Assembly: GCA_038496445.1 (NCBI GenBank)
Contig: JALMLS010000378.1
Coordinates: 1-64,000, forward strand
Length of the DNA: 64,000 nucleotides
Reading direction: 5' to 3'
Source: Trichosphaerium sp. ATCC 40318
Lineage: Eukaryota > Protista > Tubulinea
The notes under the pieces are model-generated. The model made no database searches, had not been told where the DNA came from, and saw only the letters and a list, made by a program, of their open reading frames with translations. This document shows, piece after piece, positions 17,901-30,488 of the stretch (position 1 is its first letter; each line of letters starts with the position of its first letter). Made by a program: the position numbers and the translations under genes.

Positions 17901-18222
17901 GTAAATATGTACAAACAGATTTTTTGCTTATTTTGCGTACAATGTCTTGAAGCCCTGGTATTTCTTTTACACGCTCTAATAACCACTCGTCGTCTGATTC
18001 TTTGACAACACTGCCAATCTTTAAAAAGCTTGTGGCTTCCTTCACTAAAGCATTGCGTGAAAACAGGTTTGGAGAACCGTATTTCTTTTTTAAAACATCT
18101 CTCAGCTCATCAAAGGCCGAGTTGAGTGTTTCTCTCCGTTTTCGCTCGTATAACTTTCGTTTTTCTTTTGGGTTGCGGTAATCTGTATCGCTGGCGTCTT
18201 TTTTGCGATTTCTTTGTCTCAT
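14989..18222 (-). CDS. SREBP-like membrane-tethered bHLH transcription factor (bHLH - low-complexity linker - TM1 - loop - TM2 - SREBP-type C-terminal domain)
   Basis: An in-frame spliced path of about 10 introns joins the bHLH (ERKRRETLNSAFDELRDVL..SRNALVKEA) to TM1 (YIMSFTLLFGLFY), loop GRVLQS, TM2 (YCYLALCVILCM), and then LPSQPIQCAVLLLWQVFRFAMNMSFIGTWL..LHFYNLANDLGD, which resembles the SREBP regulatory domain. Confidence 0.75.
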
Positions 18223-18372
18223 TGCGCCTTTCCTTTAGCGTAAAGGGCTGACAAAAAAAGGTAAAAACGTCAACTAATTTTAGTGCTGACCTTAACTGGA
18301 AGGAATGTCACGCTTATCATGCTGCTTTGTTAAAAATGTACAGAGTGTACAAAAGACACTTAGGTTTACATT

Positions 18373-20301
18373 TTATTTGGTCTTTGCACAATAAATAGTT
18401 GGAGCGTAAGGGTTATTTTGTTCAACTGTACCAGGAACAGTGGAAACGGTGTAGTACTTTGAGCAAACATGAGGGTAGCCCCAATCGCATACAGGATTAT
18501 CACTGTTAACTTCCGGGCTCCAAGCAATGCCAGGTGTTGGCGTTATGGTCTGCTCAATAGTAAACTGCCCTGTAGATTCGATTTTACCGATAAATACCTA
18601 AAATCAATTATATGTAAATAATAAGTCAAAATACAAGAGGTGCTTGAACATAACAACAAAAGAGTCATACACCATTTTGAATAGCACGTACAGGTTTGCT
18701 CAAATGGTGGTTGGAGTTCATTGACACAGGTTGTCCTGAAGGAGCTTGCACAGTCTGCCCTTTCATTGCTTGGCGCACTGATTTAATATCTGTTGTTCCA
18801 GATTGGGTAACTGCTTGAGCCCACATTCTGAAGCCGATGTAATGGGCCTGTGTCACTACTTGTTAGCGCGTTCTAAGACTGAATCGTATGTTAAGTACCT
18901 CCATCGGATCGTTGGTAGTCGTATCGGCAAGAGGAGTGCCAATGAAGGTCGAGTAGCTAGTCAAAAATATGAGTTGCTTTGAATCAAATTTTAGCCCAAA
19001 AAAAAAAAATGTCTTACGCTTGTCTCCATGCGTCGTTTACAGGACTGTCCTACAGGCCAACAGTTACAAATTAAATAGGACAGTAAGATGCGTACAATAG
19101 ATTGAAAGTAGTTCCAGGATGCGAAATGACCAGCAAGATTATCTCTGTCTGTTTGCGTCAGAGCTGCAAGCTCAGCTTCTCCAACGGAAAAAGCCATTAC
19201 AGGAAAATCTCCAGGGTTAATGTTCTAGAACGAAGATAGTGAGAAAGGGTACCGCAGATCGTATCATTCAGTACTCGTCGTGCAATTTCAGCGTAGAAAA
19301 AGTTGTTTGCATCGCCGTTAATCGTTGATACAACGCAAGTTTTTCCACCGTTGGCAAATGTGCTAATGTCTTCCATAATGCCAAACCAATCCGCATGTCC
19401 AAATGGCGTATAAATAGTCCTAATTTTGTCGGCTGTAATGCCCTGGGTTTGTAAATAGCTCTCAAGGATCTCATTTGTTGTTCTAAGGAAGGTGTTACTA
19501 GCGCGTAGTGGTAATGGTTGCAAACTACGAACGACATGTCACGTCACGTCACGTACCTAGGGTATACGTAATCTGTGCCAATCAATACGTACTGCAAACA
19601 GCTCTGGTTATCTCTGAGGAAGTCGACTCCAGGTATGGCCTTTTTTTTCAGTTTTTAGTTTTCTGTTTAACCCGCGTATACAAAACGTCGTACCTGCTGG
19701 TTGGGTGCAGCGCCAGTGTAAAACACATTTTTTTCACACTCTTCGGCTTCATACTGCACAGGATAAAACAGCATATGGTCTAATTCCTAATTGTGTAACC
19801 GTGAGTTTTGTGGATATCCACACGCACACGTCTACAACCGCACCTGAAAAACAGATAACACCGATTTTCGGGAAACACTCGTCCAGCATCCAAATACAAC
19901 GGATACCTTGTAATCAGTGATAAGTTCTCGAGCCCTGGTAGCAAATAGCGGCCAGTTAGACTCTCCATCAACAATTACTAGTTGTATTTGCTTCCCTTTT
20001 GCAGTGATATCAGTACTAGCAACTATTCCGCATGGTTTAATTATATCGCACCTAGAAGGCCTCCCTGATTGTTTAATTCATCCGCCATAAACCGTATGGT
20101 GTTCATTAGAGGCGTTTCCGATATGCACAGAGTGCCAGTGAGAGAGTGTAGCACACCAACTCGAATATACCTTTCTGGATCATATTCGAGGGCGGTTACG
20201 TTAGTGACGAACGGCAAGCCATCGCAAGCACCGCTTGCAACGCAATTTGGTACAAACGTGCTCAGAAAGCATAATACCAATACTATTAGGTTGTAGTGCA
20301 T
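18373..20301 (-). CDS. urtA: Urea ABC transporter substrate-binding protein (UrtA/FmdD-like) with signal peptide and ~9 spliceosomal introns
   Basis: [110 protein letters not shown] and NHHLSKP. Confidence 0.93.
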
Positions 20302-20503
20302 CTCTAATGGTTATCCAGTAGTTTTTTACAAAAATACAGAGAAAAATACTTAATTAAGTGCGCGTGTTTGGAAGCACAACAAACAGCTTTTTTAGTTAAT
20401 TAACTATCCCAGTGTCTACCACTTTCCAAGTTAACACTGATGAGAAACTATTTATAATGTAAAAATAAACTACCTAGGTTTGGAGCGTTTTCTCCAAGTG
20501 CGA

Positions 20504-22200
20504 TCAATGAGAAGTGGAAATAATCAACGTCTTAACGAGGGATTGTAACGACCTATTCAGAACCAAGTCAGCACAGCGGGAACAACAAAAAGTACCTTTG
20601 TTTTGCTCTTTTAAATCCAGAAAATTGGTTCCACGTCCAGGATTCTGTTCTGTAGTACGTTGAGAGTACCCTAACAAATTACTAAATGAAGAAAGCACGA
20701 AAAAAGGGATTGGATGGCGCGTACCGAGGATAGTAAGCCAACATCCCTCCTCCACCTATCGCTTTCAAGTCGTGCCTGGACACTTCCAACCTGTGAAAGT
20801 GAGTACATCTTCCTACAGAGAGCTGATAGAGTACCATTGTTGCGGCTTTGATATATTAAGCTTTTCCTCAGCGAATTGCAAAAACTCAACAATATTTGTT
20901 GTCGATTGCCAGTATCCGTTCGGTTTATGTACTATTCCGCGATGTTTGGGTTTACGTCTAGACAATGTGCGTTCTATTTTATTGGTGTGCCAATGCCGCA
21001 TGTCCTTCCACACCACACTTGGAAATAAGGTCGATAGCGCATCGTGGACCGATCCATTATACCTAGAGCAGCCTGTTACACGCTCGGTTGATCATAAGTG
21101 AGGCAACGTACATAGTGAGTAGGTTGTTAGCACCACACCACTGCAATTCCTGCAACGTTACTTTGTGCCAATCCTGCAACAGTTTAACGTTCAATCTGGA
21201 TGCCATAAAATTGAGCTTATCGCTTTGTGCTTGAACGGTGTTTAAACTGTTCCGTGGTGGATTCCTTGAAGGGTAGTGAATGTCATGCAACACGTTTTGG
21301 CGTACACAAATCGCCATGGTTCCCACTTGGTTGCCGGATAAATCGAAGACAGCGCATTCAATAAGGATCCATTGTAGTCCTTGACCAAAAGGCCTCCTGC
21401 ACCGAGGGCGTGAAGGTGTGTGGATGTTTTACTGTACCAATCCTCCAGCAGTTTAACGTTTAGTTCTTGTGCAATGCTATCAAACATCTGCAACCTCTTG
21501 TTGCCAGCGTCGTCAGTCCAATAGCCCATTGGAGCGCACCTATCATCACTTTGTAAAACGGGTGCACTGTTCAAGTAAAAACGCACACGAATCTAGTTAA
21601 ATCCCAAGCATAGCTAGGGTACATAGACACAAGTACTTTACTAAGAGGTTGTCGCAACCTTTATTCATTAATGTAACAAATATTTGAGTATGCACATACT
21701 TAACATGACTGTTCAATCTCTTCGTTGTCACTCTATACCAATCATCCATGACGCACACGCCTAACGACTTTGCTGCCTGAAGCAGTCGCTTCTCAAAAAT
21801 GTCATCTTTGGTATGTGGAGATCGACACCTGCTCAAGTGGTCAAACACGAAAAAATGCTCAACATTCACTTACTGAAATTCGTGGATTTTCCACTTGTGC
21901 TCTGGGTACAAGGCAAACAAGCTCTTTCGAAGAGAATTTTTGAATCTAACGGTATTTAACTACAACGACTCTTTTAGTGACTAACCTGTTCGCTAGTATC
22001 CCAGAGCCACCTCTACGCTGTACTGCCCTCACTGGTACGTCGTACCACTGTGTGTAAACGAATAACCTCAAAGATTTCGCAATGTCATCTAAAATAACTC
22101 TCGCATGGCTATTGTCGCCTACATGGTGTACTTTTTGGTTTGAGTTGTGAGATTTGCTTTTAAACGCATTTGAAGAGTAACGCGGTGCCTGTTTTATCAT
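20504..22200 (-). CDS. Uncharacterised Trp-rich tandem-repeat protein (~70-aa units), possibly mitochondrion-targeted
   Basis: About 5 repeats of GYW..(F)..A..L.V....(D)WY.V....L...GG..LL..Y.GS...AL...YP...W..W.F, with a basic Ser-rich N-terminus. Confidence 0.7.
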
Positions 22201-22366
22201 ACGCACGCATGCGAATAACGAGTGTAATGTGTGTCACTTTAGTCACGCTACACGTTAAGTTGTTTTAACAGATTTTTTTTCTTGATTTATTTTTATGAAA
22301 TCGTAAGTAAACACAAAAATCGGTTTCAATATTACAAATAATTTAAGTGCGGCGCTATTGTGCCAC

Positions 22367-25808: not shown

Positions 25809-28800
25809 TCATGGTAGTGACCATTTGTCTTGTTTGCCAACCATGGTGAGCGTTGACGAACTCATAAATCCCAAGTCTGGGACAGCGTCCAGTAAACTTT
25901 TTACAAGTGGATCTAGTGCTTCATCTAACGTATTAGGCTTGTCTTTAGTAGTTTTTGTAGGTTGCGTAGGTGCGGTTGTAACCTCAGCCGTTGGCGGACT
26001 TTCAAAATTGGCCCAATCCATATTTCCATCAATACTTGTTTGTGACCCTGAATTTCCAAGCGTAAACTGCTCACTCTGAGATTTCTTCTTGCTTTGAATC
26101 TTTTGGGATATATTCTTGAGAAAGTCATCAGCGCTTATTGGTTTGGAGGTTTCAGCTTTTAATGTGGCTCCACCAGCTAAAAAAAAAAAAGGTGTTAATG
26201 GTGGTATTTGTTGTAGTACAGCCGCCACATACCCATATCCTTAAATACGTCATCTAAGAAGTCATCGCCAGCGATAGGAGTTGTAGTTTTAGTGGTACTA
26301 GTTTTAGGTGGAGTGCCAAAGAATGAAAAATCGAGTGGTTGTGAGCTGTCTGTTGGTTTCGGCTTGCTTGTGGCCGTTGAAGGAGATTTCTTTGTGCTCT
26401 TTTTCGACTTGGACTTCTTTCTTCTGGGACTGCTTGATTTCTTTGATTTAGATGAGGAGCTTCTCTTTACCTTTGACTTTGGTGAAGCTCTTTTCGCCGG
26501 TTTCGCTACAAAATAGCATTATTGCACTGTTGTGACTATAAGAAAAGAAAATCATACCAACAACTACTGGTGCTAAAACATCCATGTGAGGATTTAGAGT
26601 AGGTAATTTTGGTGAATTACTCTCCATCGGCATAGGTAACCGAGGTGACAAATTCCAGTACTCAACATTAGTCCACGGCTTCATTGCGCCAGCATCTGCG
26701 GCTTCAGCCTAAAAAGTAGTCAGCGTTGGCTGCAGAAATGTTGTAAAATAATAATACCTCTGGCAGGCCCAGTACTAACCGTAAATTCTTCTCAATGGCC
26801 GTTCCAACAAATACAGACTGAGCAGGTACGCTGGCACTAATATACAATATTTAATTTTAATGTTGTTGAAAGGGTAGTTGATCATTGTACCTTTCATCTT
26901 TTTCTTTGCAGCGTTGAAGCAACGAAGGTACAGTTTTTTCTTTGTCAGCCTTTGCAAAATGATCGAACCCAGCTGATTGTAGTACATCCTGTATCTTGTG
27001 ATATAATTCTTTCTGTGGCAAATCATTGACCCAATGTTTTGAAGACTGAATGAATTCAGTTAAACGATGGTAATAATACAAGTCGTACACTGGGCTGTGG
27101 TGATGCCACTACAGGCTCTGGTTTAGGTGCAGGTGCCGCTGCAGGCGGCTCTTCAAAAGCTGCAAAATCACCAAATCCTCCAGCTAGTGAATAAGTAAGA
27201 AATTCACAGAGGGATCACGTGATAACGTACTTGCTGGCGCTTCGAACTCGCCAAATGCGGCAAAATCTCCAAAGTTACCCTGTAGGAATAATGAGGATCA
27301 TGAATGGTTTACTGTTATCTTACCGAAGCATCAGGTGGTTCATCAAATGAAGCAAAAGATGCTTGTGGCGCAGCAGTAGCACTGGGAGCTGGTGAATCAA
27401 ATGCTCCGAATTCAGGCATCTCTTTTGTGGCGGTGGATTCAGTGAAGGCAGCGAATCCTTCATCACTAGGCGCATCAAATGATCCAAACCCATCAGAATT
27501 ATCTTGCTGATCAATTTGTGCCTTGGCAGAGGGTTTATCACTACCCGACTCTACCGTGCCAGCATCATGTTCTGCATCGGTGGTATCCGCTACGCCCTCT
27601 TGGTCACTTATTTCAGCGACGCCTTCGTCTGTGCCTTTCTCACTAGCATCAACATCGTCTTTAGCTAGAGGATCTTGATCATTCGTTGATTCTGCAGAGC
27701 CAAAGGCGCCAAAATCTGGAGTATCTTGGGTATCTACGTCTCCAAAGGCACCAAACTCTGGAGTGTCTTGTGTGTTAGGTTCTCCAAAGTCACCAAATGC
27801 TGTTGTATCTTGGGTATTTGCATCCCCAAAGTCACCGAATGCTGGCGTGTCCTCCTCATTCGCATCTCCAAAAGCACCAAACTCTGGAGTGTCTTGCGTA
27901 TTTGATTCTCCAAAGTCACCAAATGTGAGCCCATCAGTTGCATTTGTTTCACCACTATCCACAGCACCATCTACTACATTTGTGGATTGTGAATCTGGGG
28001 CATCTTCTTCATTTGTGCTATCCACTTGAGTTGACTGAACATCACTGACAACCTCATCGGGACTATCATCATTACTAGCAGTAGAAGCTAACACTTCTTT
28101 TTCTGGTTCGTTAAAATTACCAAAGTCTGTGGCATCTGTTGAATCTGCAGAACCGAACTTAGTCACGTCTTGTGATTTGTCAATTCCTACAACTGCGCTT
28201 CCTTCTTGTACGTTATCAGCAGCAGGCTCAGTTATACTAGAATCTTGTGTCAAGTTTGTGGACTCGTCAGCGATCACATCAGGTGAAGTGGTTGCGTCAT
28301 TCACATCTGCTTCAAATGGCTTTTGCAAACTGTCAGCCTCCGAATCATTGCTGGAGTTATCGCCGCCACTAGCTGGAGGATCTTGCAAGGTATCAAAGTC
28401 TTTAGCTGGAGGCTCTTGATCATTCGTTGATTCTGCAGAGCCAAAGGCGCCAAAGTCGGGAGTATCTTGGGTATCTACGTCTCCAAAAGCGCCAAAGTCT
28501 GAAGTGTCTTGAGTATTTGATTCTCCAAAGTCACCAAAATCTGGTGTGGCTTGTGGAATTTCAGAGTCACCAAAGTTACCAAAACCGTTTACGTCTGAAT
28601 TCGCGGAGGTAACATCAGTTGTACCTTGCGTTGGAATGGTGAGAGTATCATTCTCTGGCTCTGTAGTTGTACTGGGATCATTGTTATCATGCTGACTTAC
28701 GGTGTCATTGACGGGTTCATCATCAGCAACATCTTCATTAATATCATCTGGCGTATTATCAAAAGGTACTTCTGTTGAGGAGGTACTACCATACTGCGCT

Positions 28801-30488
28801 TCCACAGCACTCAGTTTTTGTTGAGGCTCGGTTGAGTTGTCGCTGTGTTCGCTACGATTAGTATCATCTTCTGGGCTTGTGATACTGGAATCCGGTACAT
28901 TTTCAGTAGAAAGAGCGACCTCAGGATTATTTACTTGGCCAAACGAGAAATCAGCGCCATTGCCCATAGAATCAAACGCTCCAAATTCGGTAGATTGGTC
29001 ACTTGGCTCTGCAAATGCTGAAAACTGGGTATCATTTTCAGCAGCACCAACAACATTATTAAATTCAATAGAAGGTTGTGCGGTTATAGAGTTGTCAGAA
29101 CTCGATGAACGCGGACTAGAAACTTGTTCAATACCATTTGCAACAGATTCATCGTTAGCGCTTTCTTGTTCTTCATCAGCATCTGTGGTAGCAGCATCGC
29201 CAATGGATTCAGTAATGTTCTCTTGTGCTGTTTGGTCATCACCTACTTGTGCTTCGTCTTGTTCGTTGCTTGCTGTTTCTACAGGTGGAGCAGTTTCGTC
29301 GTTATCAATAGTACTTGACTGCGTTTCCATTGCATCAAACGTTGTGTCCATAGTCGGTGGACTAGCCATGCCAGGTTCACTATCTACATCAAATGAGGTA
29401 AATGAATCACCAGTTAAGCCCACATTGGTTGTTTCGGTAGTCACAAGTTCCTCGCTTGTATCTGCGAGGCCTGTAGGTGGCTCTACTACTTCAGGGTTAT
29501 CATCTGAGCCTGTCAAGGCGCCAAATTCGTGCGCTTGTAGCGTGTCATCAAGTTGGCTATCGGATTGATCAGTGCTAAAGTTGGTAGTTGATTGTGCTCC
29601 AACATTTGGTGTTGCAGAATTGTCTTGTGGTTCCTGAATATTACCCTCCACCCCATTTTGCTCAGGCAATGTGCCAGAGGTCCCATTCATATGCAGTTGA
29701 GCGTCAGTAGCTGCTGTGCCATTAGTAGCCTCCGAGGGAGCGCTCTCAAAGGAACCAAATGCATTAAAATCTGTCGATGTGCCGGCTGATTCAAAATTTG
29801 CGAATTGCGTGTCATCTGGGAAGCCATTCGCAGCGCCTTGTATAGGAGCGGCGAAAGAACCAAACGCTGAAAAGTCGACTTCTTCGTTAGTGCCACTACC
29901 TGCAACACTTGTGAGCATGTGGACGCAATGCTGTAGTATGTACCCCAAGCAGCCCACTCAGTGGTGGCGCCTCCCGTTTCGGAGTTGTCTTCAACGCGCT
30001 CATCCAGTTGTTGCACTCTGCTTCCTTGTTGCGATGGTCTGGTAATAATAATTAGCTGAATATCGGTTTTACAAAATGCCCAAAAAGGTACCTTGAACCA
30101 ACAGATCCTACTTCAACGCCAATTGACGAAGCGCCAATTGATGACGCATCATTGTCGCCATCAAATGAATGGTCTATGGCCAAAAATCCGTTGCCATTGC
30201 TATTTGTGTCGTTGTGCGTTGCTTGTTTATCAATATCACCAGATTTAACTACAGCTTCTAATTTTTGTGTAGTGAGGTGCCCATTTGTGTCTACAAGCTG
30301 TAAGGCTAGCGTAACACGCACGAATAGTTTAATAGATTTTCCCATCAACAGAACGAATAAATAATGTAACAGCAGCATAACGCACCTTCCATAGAATCTT
30401 GTGTCAATGTACTGTGCGTTGTTGGTTCCTCCGTTCCATCCAGCGTCAGATTATTTTGGTTGGTACCAGCGCCTGGAGGATTCTCCAT
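25809..30488 (-). CDS. Aftiphilin/CLBA1-like clathrin-AP-1 accessory protein
   Basis: Long acidic disordered region with many (D/E)FG(D/A/E)F gamma-ear-binding motifs, a DWANF (WxxF) motif, and C-terminal LLDAVPDLGFMSSSTL resembling the aftiphilin LPDLSFM box. Confidence 0.75.
27675..27925 (-). repeat. Coding tandem repeat, 42-bp (14-aa) unit, ~6 copies
   Basis: FGDFGESNTQDTPE / FGAFGDANEEDTPA / FGDFGDANTQDTTA / FGDFGEPNTQDTPE / FGAFGDVDTQDTPD / FGAFGSAES. Confidence 0.9.
28416..28587 (-). repeat. Second copy of the 42-bp coding repeat array (~4 units)
   Basis: FGDFGESNTQDTSDFGAFGDVDTQDTPDFGAFGSAESTNDQ; the DNA is nearly identical to the end of the 27675-27925 array. Confidence 0.9.

Follow-up and report, generated by a model that had tools for sequence, protein, structure and literature searches.

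A spliced protist gene for a UrtA-like, putatively urea-binding protein, probably derived from an old transfer of a proteobacterial-type urtA

The window, the whole stretch of 64,000 nucleotides that was analysed, contains on its minus strand a UrtA-like coding sequence that runs from an ATG at 20301 to a TAA at 18375-18373. In the three-frame translation and the list of open reading frames (ORFs) of the region 18373-20301, UrtA-like peptides were scattered over several frames, and the resulting gene model comprises 10 exons with 461 codons plus the stop codon. The coding sequence coincides exactly with the span given in the original prediction, and all six of the motifs quoted there could be found in the exon translations. 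About nine GT-AG introns had been predicted, and nine were indeed identified, with lengths of 56, 57, 54, 74, 50, 46, 61, 51 and 94 nt (46-94 nt). All nine are of the GT..AG type, the donors mostly read GTRCG, and three codons (Gly, Arg and Ala) are split by an intron. The features are listed below, where X1 to X4 denote public runs whose contigs were used.

18373..20301, minus strand: whole UrtA-like coding region (exon-wise Pfam and NCBIfam matches, splice sites, spliced contigs)
20233..20301, minus strand: predicted ER signal peptide, approximately residues 1-23, a hydrophobic core followed by VAS|G (hydrophobicity; cleavage site by eye, -3/-1 rule)
20052..20301, minus strand: exon 1, signal peptide, 22-aa linker with a Cys and an N-glycosylation site, and start of lobe 1 (Peripla_BP_5 positions 1-37; without contig cover)
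19996..20051, minus strand: intron 1, 56 nt, GT..AG, inferred (collinearity with bacterial UrtA; without contig cover)
19844..19995, minus strand: exon 2, GCWTS with the urea-contact Trp and Ser (family matches; joint 19786/19844 in X1 and X2)
19694..19786, minus strand: exon 3, FYPVQYE (contact Tyr, Gln and Glu) and GAAPNQQ (family matches; both flanking joints seen)
19557..19639, minus strand: exon 4, DYVYPR with the contact Tyr; position 192 is Tyr, as in the proteobacterial type (TIGR03407 match; joints in X2)
19275..19482, minus strand: exon 5, STINGDAN with the contact Asn (Peripla_BP_5; joint with exon 4 seen, exon 5/6 junction as a loose end in X2)
19096..19224, minus strand: exon 6, AFSVGE with the contact Ser, and WNYF (Peripla_BP_5; X4 contig 9)
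19018..19049, minus strand: exon 7, 32 nt (both joints in X4 contig 9)
18899..18956, minus strand: exon 8, 58 nt, 3' end NDPME (both joints in X4 contig 9)
18692..18847, minus strand: exon 9, return of the lobe and NHHLSKP (Peripla_BP_5 positions 277-332; joint in X4, 3' junction as a loose end in X3)
18373..18597, minus strand: exon 10, UrtA C-terminal tail with CDWGYPHVC, 20-residue extension and stop (aligns with bacterial UrtA tails; covered by X1, X3 and X4)
18372..18377, minus strand: AATAAA poly(A)-type signal overlapping the stop codon (sequence; contig ends at 18356-18370)

Over 18300-20400 the window was aligned with contigs of public runs that stem from three studies. Six introns are skipped exactly by spliced contigs (18848-18898, 18957-19017, 19050-19095, 19483-19556, 19640-19693 and 19787-19843), and two further introns (18598-18691 and 19225-19274) are backed by loose ends of contigs. 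Eight of the nine introns are thus visible in spliced contigs, while exon 1 and intron 1 lie outside their cover and intron 1 follows from homology alone. The source runs are presumed, not certain, to be RNA, and the intron-free copies show splicing either way. The original prediction had made its case dependent on spliced reads, and spliced contigs were found in all three studies. For intron 1 (20051-19996) the site was set by gap-free collinearity with bacterial UrtA (GGLL-G-KQIQL versus GGLLGKKLE). A 29-nt alternative of this intron, which would add nine residues, was rejected, as the 56-nt version gives the gap-free alignment.

Contigs of two runs are identical to the window. In X1 and X2, which belong to one study, a spliced variant of 95-99% identity was observed that carries an in-frame CGT insertion after 19354 and a C>T exchange at 19754; this variant probably represents a sister strain or species. 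The additional codon falls in the loop preceding GGKTCVV, in which bacterial UrtA has one residue more than the window protein. At the 3' end of the gene the contigs stop at 18356-18370, ∼20 nt past the AATAAA. Since the stop codon overlaps this signal, the contigs end there and the next ORF begins at 18222, a further exon encoding an anchor is excluded. The spacing is very compact, with ∼150 nt between the UrtA-like stop and the start of this next minus-strand ORF.

Within the 64 kb the neighbours of the gene are ordinary eukaryotic genes, among them Vps35, mevalonate-diphosphate decarboxylase (MDD), Tom37/metaxin, F-box/LRR, PX-PH, MORN and ankyrin-repeat genes. The UrtA-like gene has an exon GC of 44.7%, an intron GC of 37.9% and a GC3 of 41.7%, and both exon GC and GC3 are close to those of the neighbouring host ORFs. 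When 1289 ORFs taken from the flanks of 80 bacterial urtA loci were compared with the window, neither urtB nor any other urtA-flank gene was found in the 64-kb window; the only match was the UrtA gene itself. This agrees with the earlier statement that no urtBCDE genes lie nearby.

The family membership of the protein was examined by scanning the exons one by one. Seven exons match Peripla_BP_5 (PF13433) and TIGR03407 (urea_ABC_UrtA) in strict order, at profile positions 1-38, 38-88, 91-120, 121-148, 150-212, 216-254 and 280-336. The exon-wise E-values of 1e-5 to 1e-20 are far beyond chance, and six of the seven exons, which together span PF13433 positions 1-332, pass the 27-bit cut-off of this profile singly. 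For TIGR03407 the scores of the separately scanned exons sum to ∼313 bits, where the cut-off of 492.75 applies to a whole-protein score. Exon 10 has no Pfam or NCBIfam match, but still aligns to the C-terminal tail of bacterial UrtA. Among 80 bacterial UrtA sequences, 132 columns are at least 95% identical; the exons cover 127 of these and keep 111, and the changes at such near-invariant columns are mostly conservative. Judged by these scores, the protein appears to be a divergent rather than a canonical UrtA.

Solved structures of UrtA are 8HIC, 7S6E and 7S6F. In UrtA of Prochlorococcus (PDB 8HIC) urea is held by the conserved contacts W120, S122, Y141, Q144, E146, Y190, N246 and S274, most of which were confirmed by mutation (PMC10392092). 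All eight residues (W, S, Y, Q, E, Y, N and S) recur unchanged in the window exons. At position 192 the window protein has Tyr, as do all 56 proteobacterial-type UrtA, whereas all 24 of the cyanobacterial type have Phe. AmiC of the Pseudomonas amidase operon (PDB 1PEA, 1QNL) belongs to the same Pfam family and provides a precedent for ligand sensing without a transporter. It departs from UrtA at several of the urea-contact positions, and its pocket motifs CYMS, YPTPYE, TVVGTG and LTTSE stand against GCWTS, YPVQYE, TINGD and AFSVGE in the window protein, so that the pocket is of the UrtA and not of the AmiC type. The window exons also score as UrtA and not as AmiC, and AmiC is cytoplasmic and has no signal peptide. 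Because the eight contact residues are intact, the protein most likely binds one urea molecule with high affinity, its lobes closing as in bacterial UrtA. In a dinoflagellate, a transcript with an AmiC-like annotation ('aliphatic amidase expression-regulating protein') was upregulated under nitrogen depletion (PMC4860509).

A Kyte-Doolittle scan of the 461-residue protein identified a hydrophobic segment at residues 3-17 (mean 2.27) and no second one. This segment, with VAS|G after it, corresponds to the predicted hydrophobic signal peptide and is followed by a linker of 22 residues with one Cys and an NVT site. The hydrophobicity is thus confined to the N-terminus and the stop overlaps the AATAAA, which bears out the prediction that the protein has neither a transmembrane anchor nor a fused kinase or cyclase. 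Likewise, a membrane-spanning output domain of the kind found in Venus-flytrap receptors (class-C GPCR, receptor cyclase or kinase) is absent from the window gene. From the predicted signal peptide it is inferred that the protein enters the secretory pathway and may be secreted.

Several cysteines had been described as added, which holds for part of them. The cysteines were compared with a panel of 56 proteobacterial-type and 24 cyanobacterial-type UrtA, with the cysteine of GAC in the N-terminal linker lying outside the alignment. Those of TLC, QSC and KTC are absent from every one of the 80 panel sequences, but those of EEC, CDW and HVC do occur in bacterial UrtA: the EEC and CDW cysteines are universal in the 24 cyanobacterial-type proteins and absent from the proteobacterial type, and the HVC cysteine is present in 84% of the proteobacterial-type proteins. 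The cysteines of the window protein thus form a mosaic of both UrtA types together with its own.

For homology searches and trees the spliced model was used exon by exon, with exons as separate rows. An exhaustive HMMER search of 1.84 billion cluster representatives, with exon 2 as the query, gave 764 matches; when these were ranked by summed tblastn over all exons, the best were bacterial UrtA with ∼50% identity, and no closer representative or fragment was found. A profile scan of species-representative bacterial genomes with exon 5 yielded at least 80 loci with 51-61% identity, mostly from Alpha-, Beta- and Gammaproteobacteria and Campylobacterota. Among the matches listed, proteobacterial-type UrtA reached a mean of 385 bits and a maximum of 455 in summed tblastn, compared to a mean of 297 and a maximum of 319 bits for the cyanobacterial type. 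The top scorers among the matches listed were Minwuia, followed by Pleomorphomonas, Hyphomicrobiaceae, Azospirillum and Xanthobacter. The tail motif DWxYPxVC was found, among the matches listed, only in the window protein and in three Rhodospirillales-like sequences (L007, L015 and L039). Two further scans were of less use: the 108-aa exon-5 ORF retrieved from a protein word index, in which a length filter hides full-length relatives, a single fragment of an unrelated lineage with 56% identity, and a match to exon 10 in a metagenome scan (L006) was discarded as a chance match without UrtA similarity.

UrtA-type proteins were also identified outside the bacterial panel. P0001 (L001:432-11669, also in L002-L004) is a protein of 3745 aa on transcript-like contigs of four public runs with a GC of 62%. 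It consists of ∼nine tandem UrtA-type domains, each with intact urea contacts, followed by a class-C GPCR domain (7tm_3), and looks like an undescribed eukaryotic receptor with an array of urea-type flytraps. In its 5' region an upstream ATG with a signal-peptide-like start was observed. P0148 and P0059 are fragments with tandem domains on JGI contigs; P0148 and L005:151-1671 carry tandem UrtA domains on two JGI contigs that have no introns and are metatranscript-like, and both cluster with P0001. P0001, P0148 and P0059 form one clade beside cyanobacterial-type UrtA and have kept the urea pocket. Bacterial proteins of 1450-1600 aa (P0004, P0005, P0014, P0027 and P0141) have a UrtA domain at each end and, in the middle, HEAT repeats and a STAND (NACHT/NB-ARC) NTPase; one of them comes from a Deltaproteobacteria MAG. 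These could be urea-sensing STAND switches.

The exon rows were added to a backbone of 90 sequences, the bacterial part of which was drawn from the exon-5 loci. When placed freely, exons 2, 3, 4, 5, 6 and 9 went to the proteobacterial-type clade, either into it or to its base, and two of these (5 and 9) joined Insolitispirillum, Azospirillum and Minwuia. The positions of exons 1, 8 and 10, which are short or variable, were unstable. When all exon rows were forced into a single clade (FastTree, 80 column-resampled bootstrap replicates), this clade was in all 80 replicates sister to or nested in UrtA of the proteobacterial type and of no other. In 44 replicates its sister group comprised all 56 proteobacterial-type sequences; in another 24 it was a subset of 46-48, and in the remaining 12 it was one leaf. 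The log-likelihoods (lnL) of alternative placements were as follows.

Free placement: lnL -28272.4, cost 0
Window gene with the three Rhodospirillales-like sequences: lnL -28275.9, cost 3.6, not meaningfully worse
Window gene with the cyanobacterial type and the tandem family: lnL -28308.5, cost 36.1
Window gene with the eukaryote-like tandem family: lnL -28346.3, cost 73.9
Window gene with the cyanobacterial type: lnL -28351.8, cost 79.5

These placements indicate that the window gene is a deep-branching UrtA of the proteobacterial type. Both the identity of ∼50% to proteobacterial-type UrtA and the unanimous bootstrap replicates agree with the bacterial origin that the original prediction had assigned to it. 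The donor was possibly a Rhodospirillales-like or an unsampled lineage, and a closer donor may exist beyond the panel. The transfer had also been proposed to be old, and this is supported, because the gene has nine host-style introns, an ameliorated composition and a deep branch.

Compared to UrtA of the bacterial UrtABCDE importer, of which Minwuia, Pleomorphomonas, Azospirillum and Insolitispirillum have the closest sampled sequences, the window protein shows the same two-lobe Peripla_BP_5 profile in order and at full length, with the eight contacts. It resembles the proteobacterial proteins in Tyr 192 and the C-terminal Cys, and the Rhodospirillales-like subgroup in the DWxYPxVC tail. In contrast to the bacterial genes, the window gene is nuclear, is interrupted by nine introns, encodes a signal peptide of the ER type, carries a poly(A) signal and has no urtBCDE beside it; its product is only ∼50% identical, with at least three cysteines absent from the panel, a C-terminal extension of 20 residues and the EEC/CDW pair that is otherwise typical of the cyanobacterial type. 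Literature searches yielded no eukaryotic UrtA that is nuclear and has introns, nor anything direct on UrtA in amoebae or eukaryotes. A giant virus as an intermediate left no sign in viral contigs, where the matches were only of bacterial grade (45-58%). A chrysophyte giant virus, ChrysoHV, carries two UrtA copies with 81-90% identity to Prochlorococcus (PMC13595923). As in the window, a stand-alone urtA appears there to have passed from bacteria to a genome tied to a bacterivorous protist; however, the ChrysoHV copies are recent, cyanobacterial-type, viral and intron-free, whereas the window gene is old, proteobacterial-type and nuclear.

Urea ranks among the main forms in which nitrogen is recycled. 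The substrate-binding protein of an ABC importer is generally regarded as useless if its permease is missing, and to our knowledge eukaryotes do not operate such importers. The window UrtA has long been under clear constraint in a eukaryotic genome, its pocket is intact and no permease gene was found beside it, which suggests that its high-affinity urea binding serves a purpose other than transport. The window gene is probably a nuclear, expressed and spliced protist gene that goes back to an old transfer of a proteobacterial-type urtA and encodes a soluble urea binder of the secretory pathway, uncoupled from ABC transport. A proteobacterial-type urtA would have been taken up long ago by horizontal transfer into an amoeba-type protist, and would since have acquired the base composition of the host, nine introns in the style of the host, a signal peptide of the eukaryotic kind and a poly(A) signal. 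Its product, a soluble two-lobed Venus-flytrap protein of 461 residues, would be routed to the secretory pathway and close on one urea molecule with high affinity. Because no UrtBCDE gene is present in the window and none is expected in a eukaryote, the binding step would be uncoupled from ABC transport. The protein would most likely bind urea in an unattached state, either extracellularly or within endocytic/phagosomal compartments, and might there hand the urea over to a eukaryotic transporter or receptor in the membrane, or keep it sequestered. As an anchor-free soluble binder would diffuse away from a free-living cell, a role as extracellular scavenger is awkward; in our opinion a luminal (endocytic/phagosomal) site or a role as co-receptor is somewhat more plausible than scavenging in open water.

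It is conceivable, although unlikely, that the protein serves as a soluble co-receptor, which in its urea-loaded form docks on a membrane receptor, such as a kinase or a 7TM protein of the class-C type, and steers chemotaxis or nitrogen-status signalling. Bacterial binding proteins dock on chemoreceptors when loaded with ligand, and the fusion of ∼nine intact-pocket UrtA-type domains to 7tm_3 in P0001 indicates that the UrtA fold has already served as the ectodomain of a eukaryotic receptor. Fusions of UrtA with STAND NTPases occur in bacteria, and the window protein has kept 87% of the near-invariant UrtA columns, which goes beyond the needs of the pocket. However, there is no known receptor partner and nothing partner-like is located nearby in the window, the gene has no fused output domain, and P0001 comes from a different UrtA lineage.

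That the gene was passed down vertically within an old UrtA family of eukaryotes, and was not transferred into this lineage, is considered very unlikely. Eukaryote-like UrtA proteins do exist in P0001, P0148 and P0059, which share the EEC and CDW cysteines with the window protein but not with the proteobacterial type; exons 8 and 10, when taken alone, place beside these three proteins, and orthologues in other eukaryotes are possible, as the searches were made exon by exon. Nevertheless, these proteins group with the cyanobacterial type, and the best matches of P0148 are cyanobacterial (51-53%). All 80 bootstrap replicates place the window gene with the proteobacterial type, and uniting it with the eukaryote-like group costs 74 lnL. 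Moreover, of 57 type-diagnostic columns covered by the exons, 38 are proteobacterial and six cyanobacterial in the window gene, and nothing closer than ∼50% was found among the 1.84 billion representatives. The original prediction had named a broad eukaryotic clade as an observation against it; the other eukaryote-like UrtA that were found form a cyanobacterial-type clade instead. The tandem proteins resemble the window protein in their UrtA-type domains, intact urea pockets and eukaryote-like transcripts, but they are arrays, one of them fused to a GPCR, are 35-40% identical to it, and a common origin is disfavored by the 74 lnL. As they derive from cyanobacterial-type UrtA, P0001, P0148 and P0059 appear to be a recruitment of the UrtA fold separate from that of the window gene.

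Equally doubtful is the possibility that the fold was kept while the ligand or role changed, be it to another small amide, to a structural role without binding, or to a decaying gene. The identity of ∼50%, the exon-wise TIGR03407 sum under the whole-protein cut-off, the cysteines (at least three) found in no panel UrtA and the 20-residue tail extension would fit such a change, and the family relative AmiC (PDB 1PEA) binds amides. However, all eight urea contacts are unchanged, with AmiC different at several of them, and the frame is intact over ten exons and is kept by the close variant despite its indel. Bacterial contamination or mis-assembly might be suspected because the protein is clearly of bacterial type and because two of the runs contain, as loose ends, another urtA-like contig with a high GC. 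This is refuted by the nine GT..AG introns, of which eight are seen to be spliced out in contigs of three studies, by the flanking intron-bearing eukaryotic genes on one 64-kb stretch, by a GC3 of 42%, and by the eukaryotic signal peptide and the AATAAA. The introns had rightly been put forward against contamination, an argument with which the spliced contigs, the eukaryotic neighbours and the host-like GC3 agree.

If the protein is indeed a soluble urea binder of the secretory pathway, one small soluble protein and one ligand would provide a simple entry to urea sensing and handling in protists. A more speculative and rather improbable extension is that a phagotroph has turned the bacterial binder into a luminal or extracellular urea factor, acting either as a soluble co-receptor or by withholding urea from urease-positive prey in the phagosome. 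In the phagosomal case such prey would be starved of the urea that it uses for acid neutralisation. Together with the lineage of the UrtA-array GPCR, this would mean that the UrtA fold was recruited at least two times in eukaryotes for transport-independent urea recognition. The GPCR with ∼nine UrtA-type domains further hints that flytrap modules of the urea type could form a class of eukaryotic sensor domains that has been overlooked.

Two other regions on the minus strand of the window attracted attention. At 21063-22206 four consecutive ORFs of 86-114 aa share the motif LNVKLLEDWY / VMDDWYRV and probably constitute one gene with a repeated domain. At 27315-29957 an acidic low-complexity ORF of 880 aa contains many T(P)DFGAFG / FGDFG repeats, which look like adaptor-binding or FG-type motifs.
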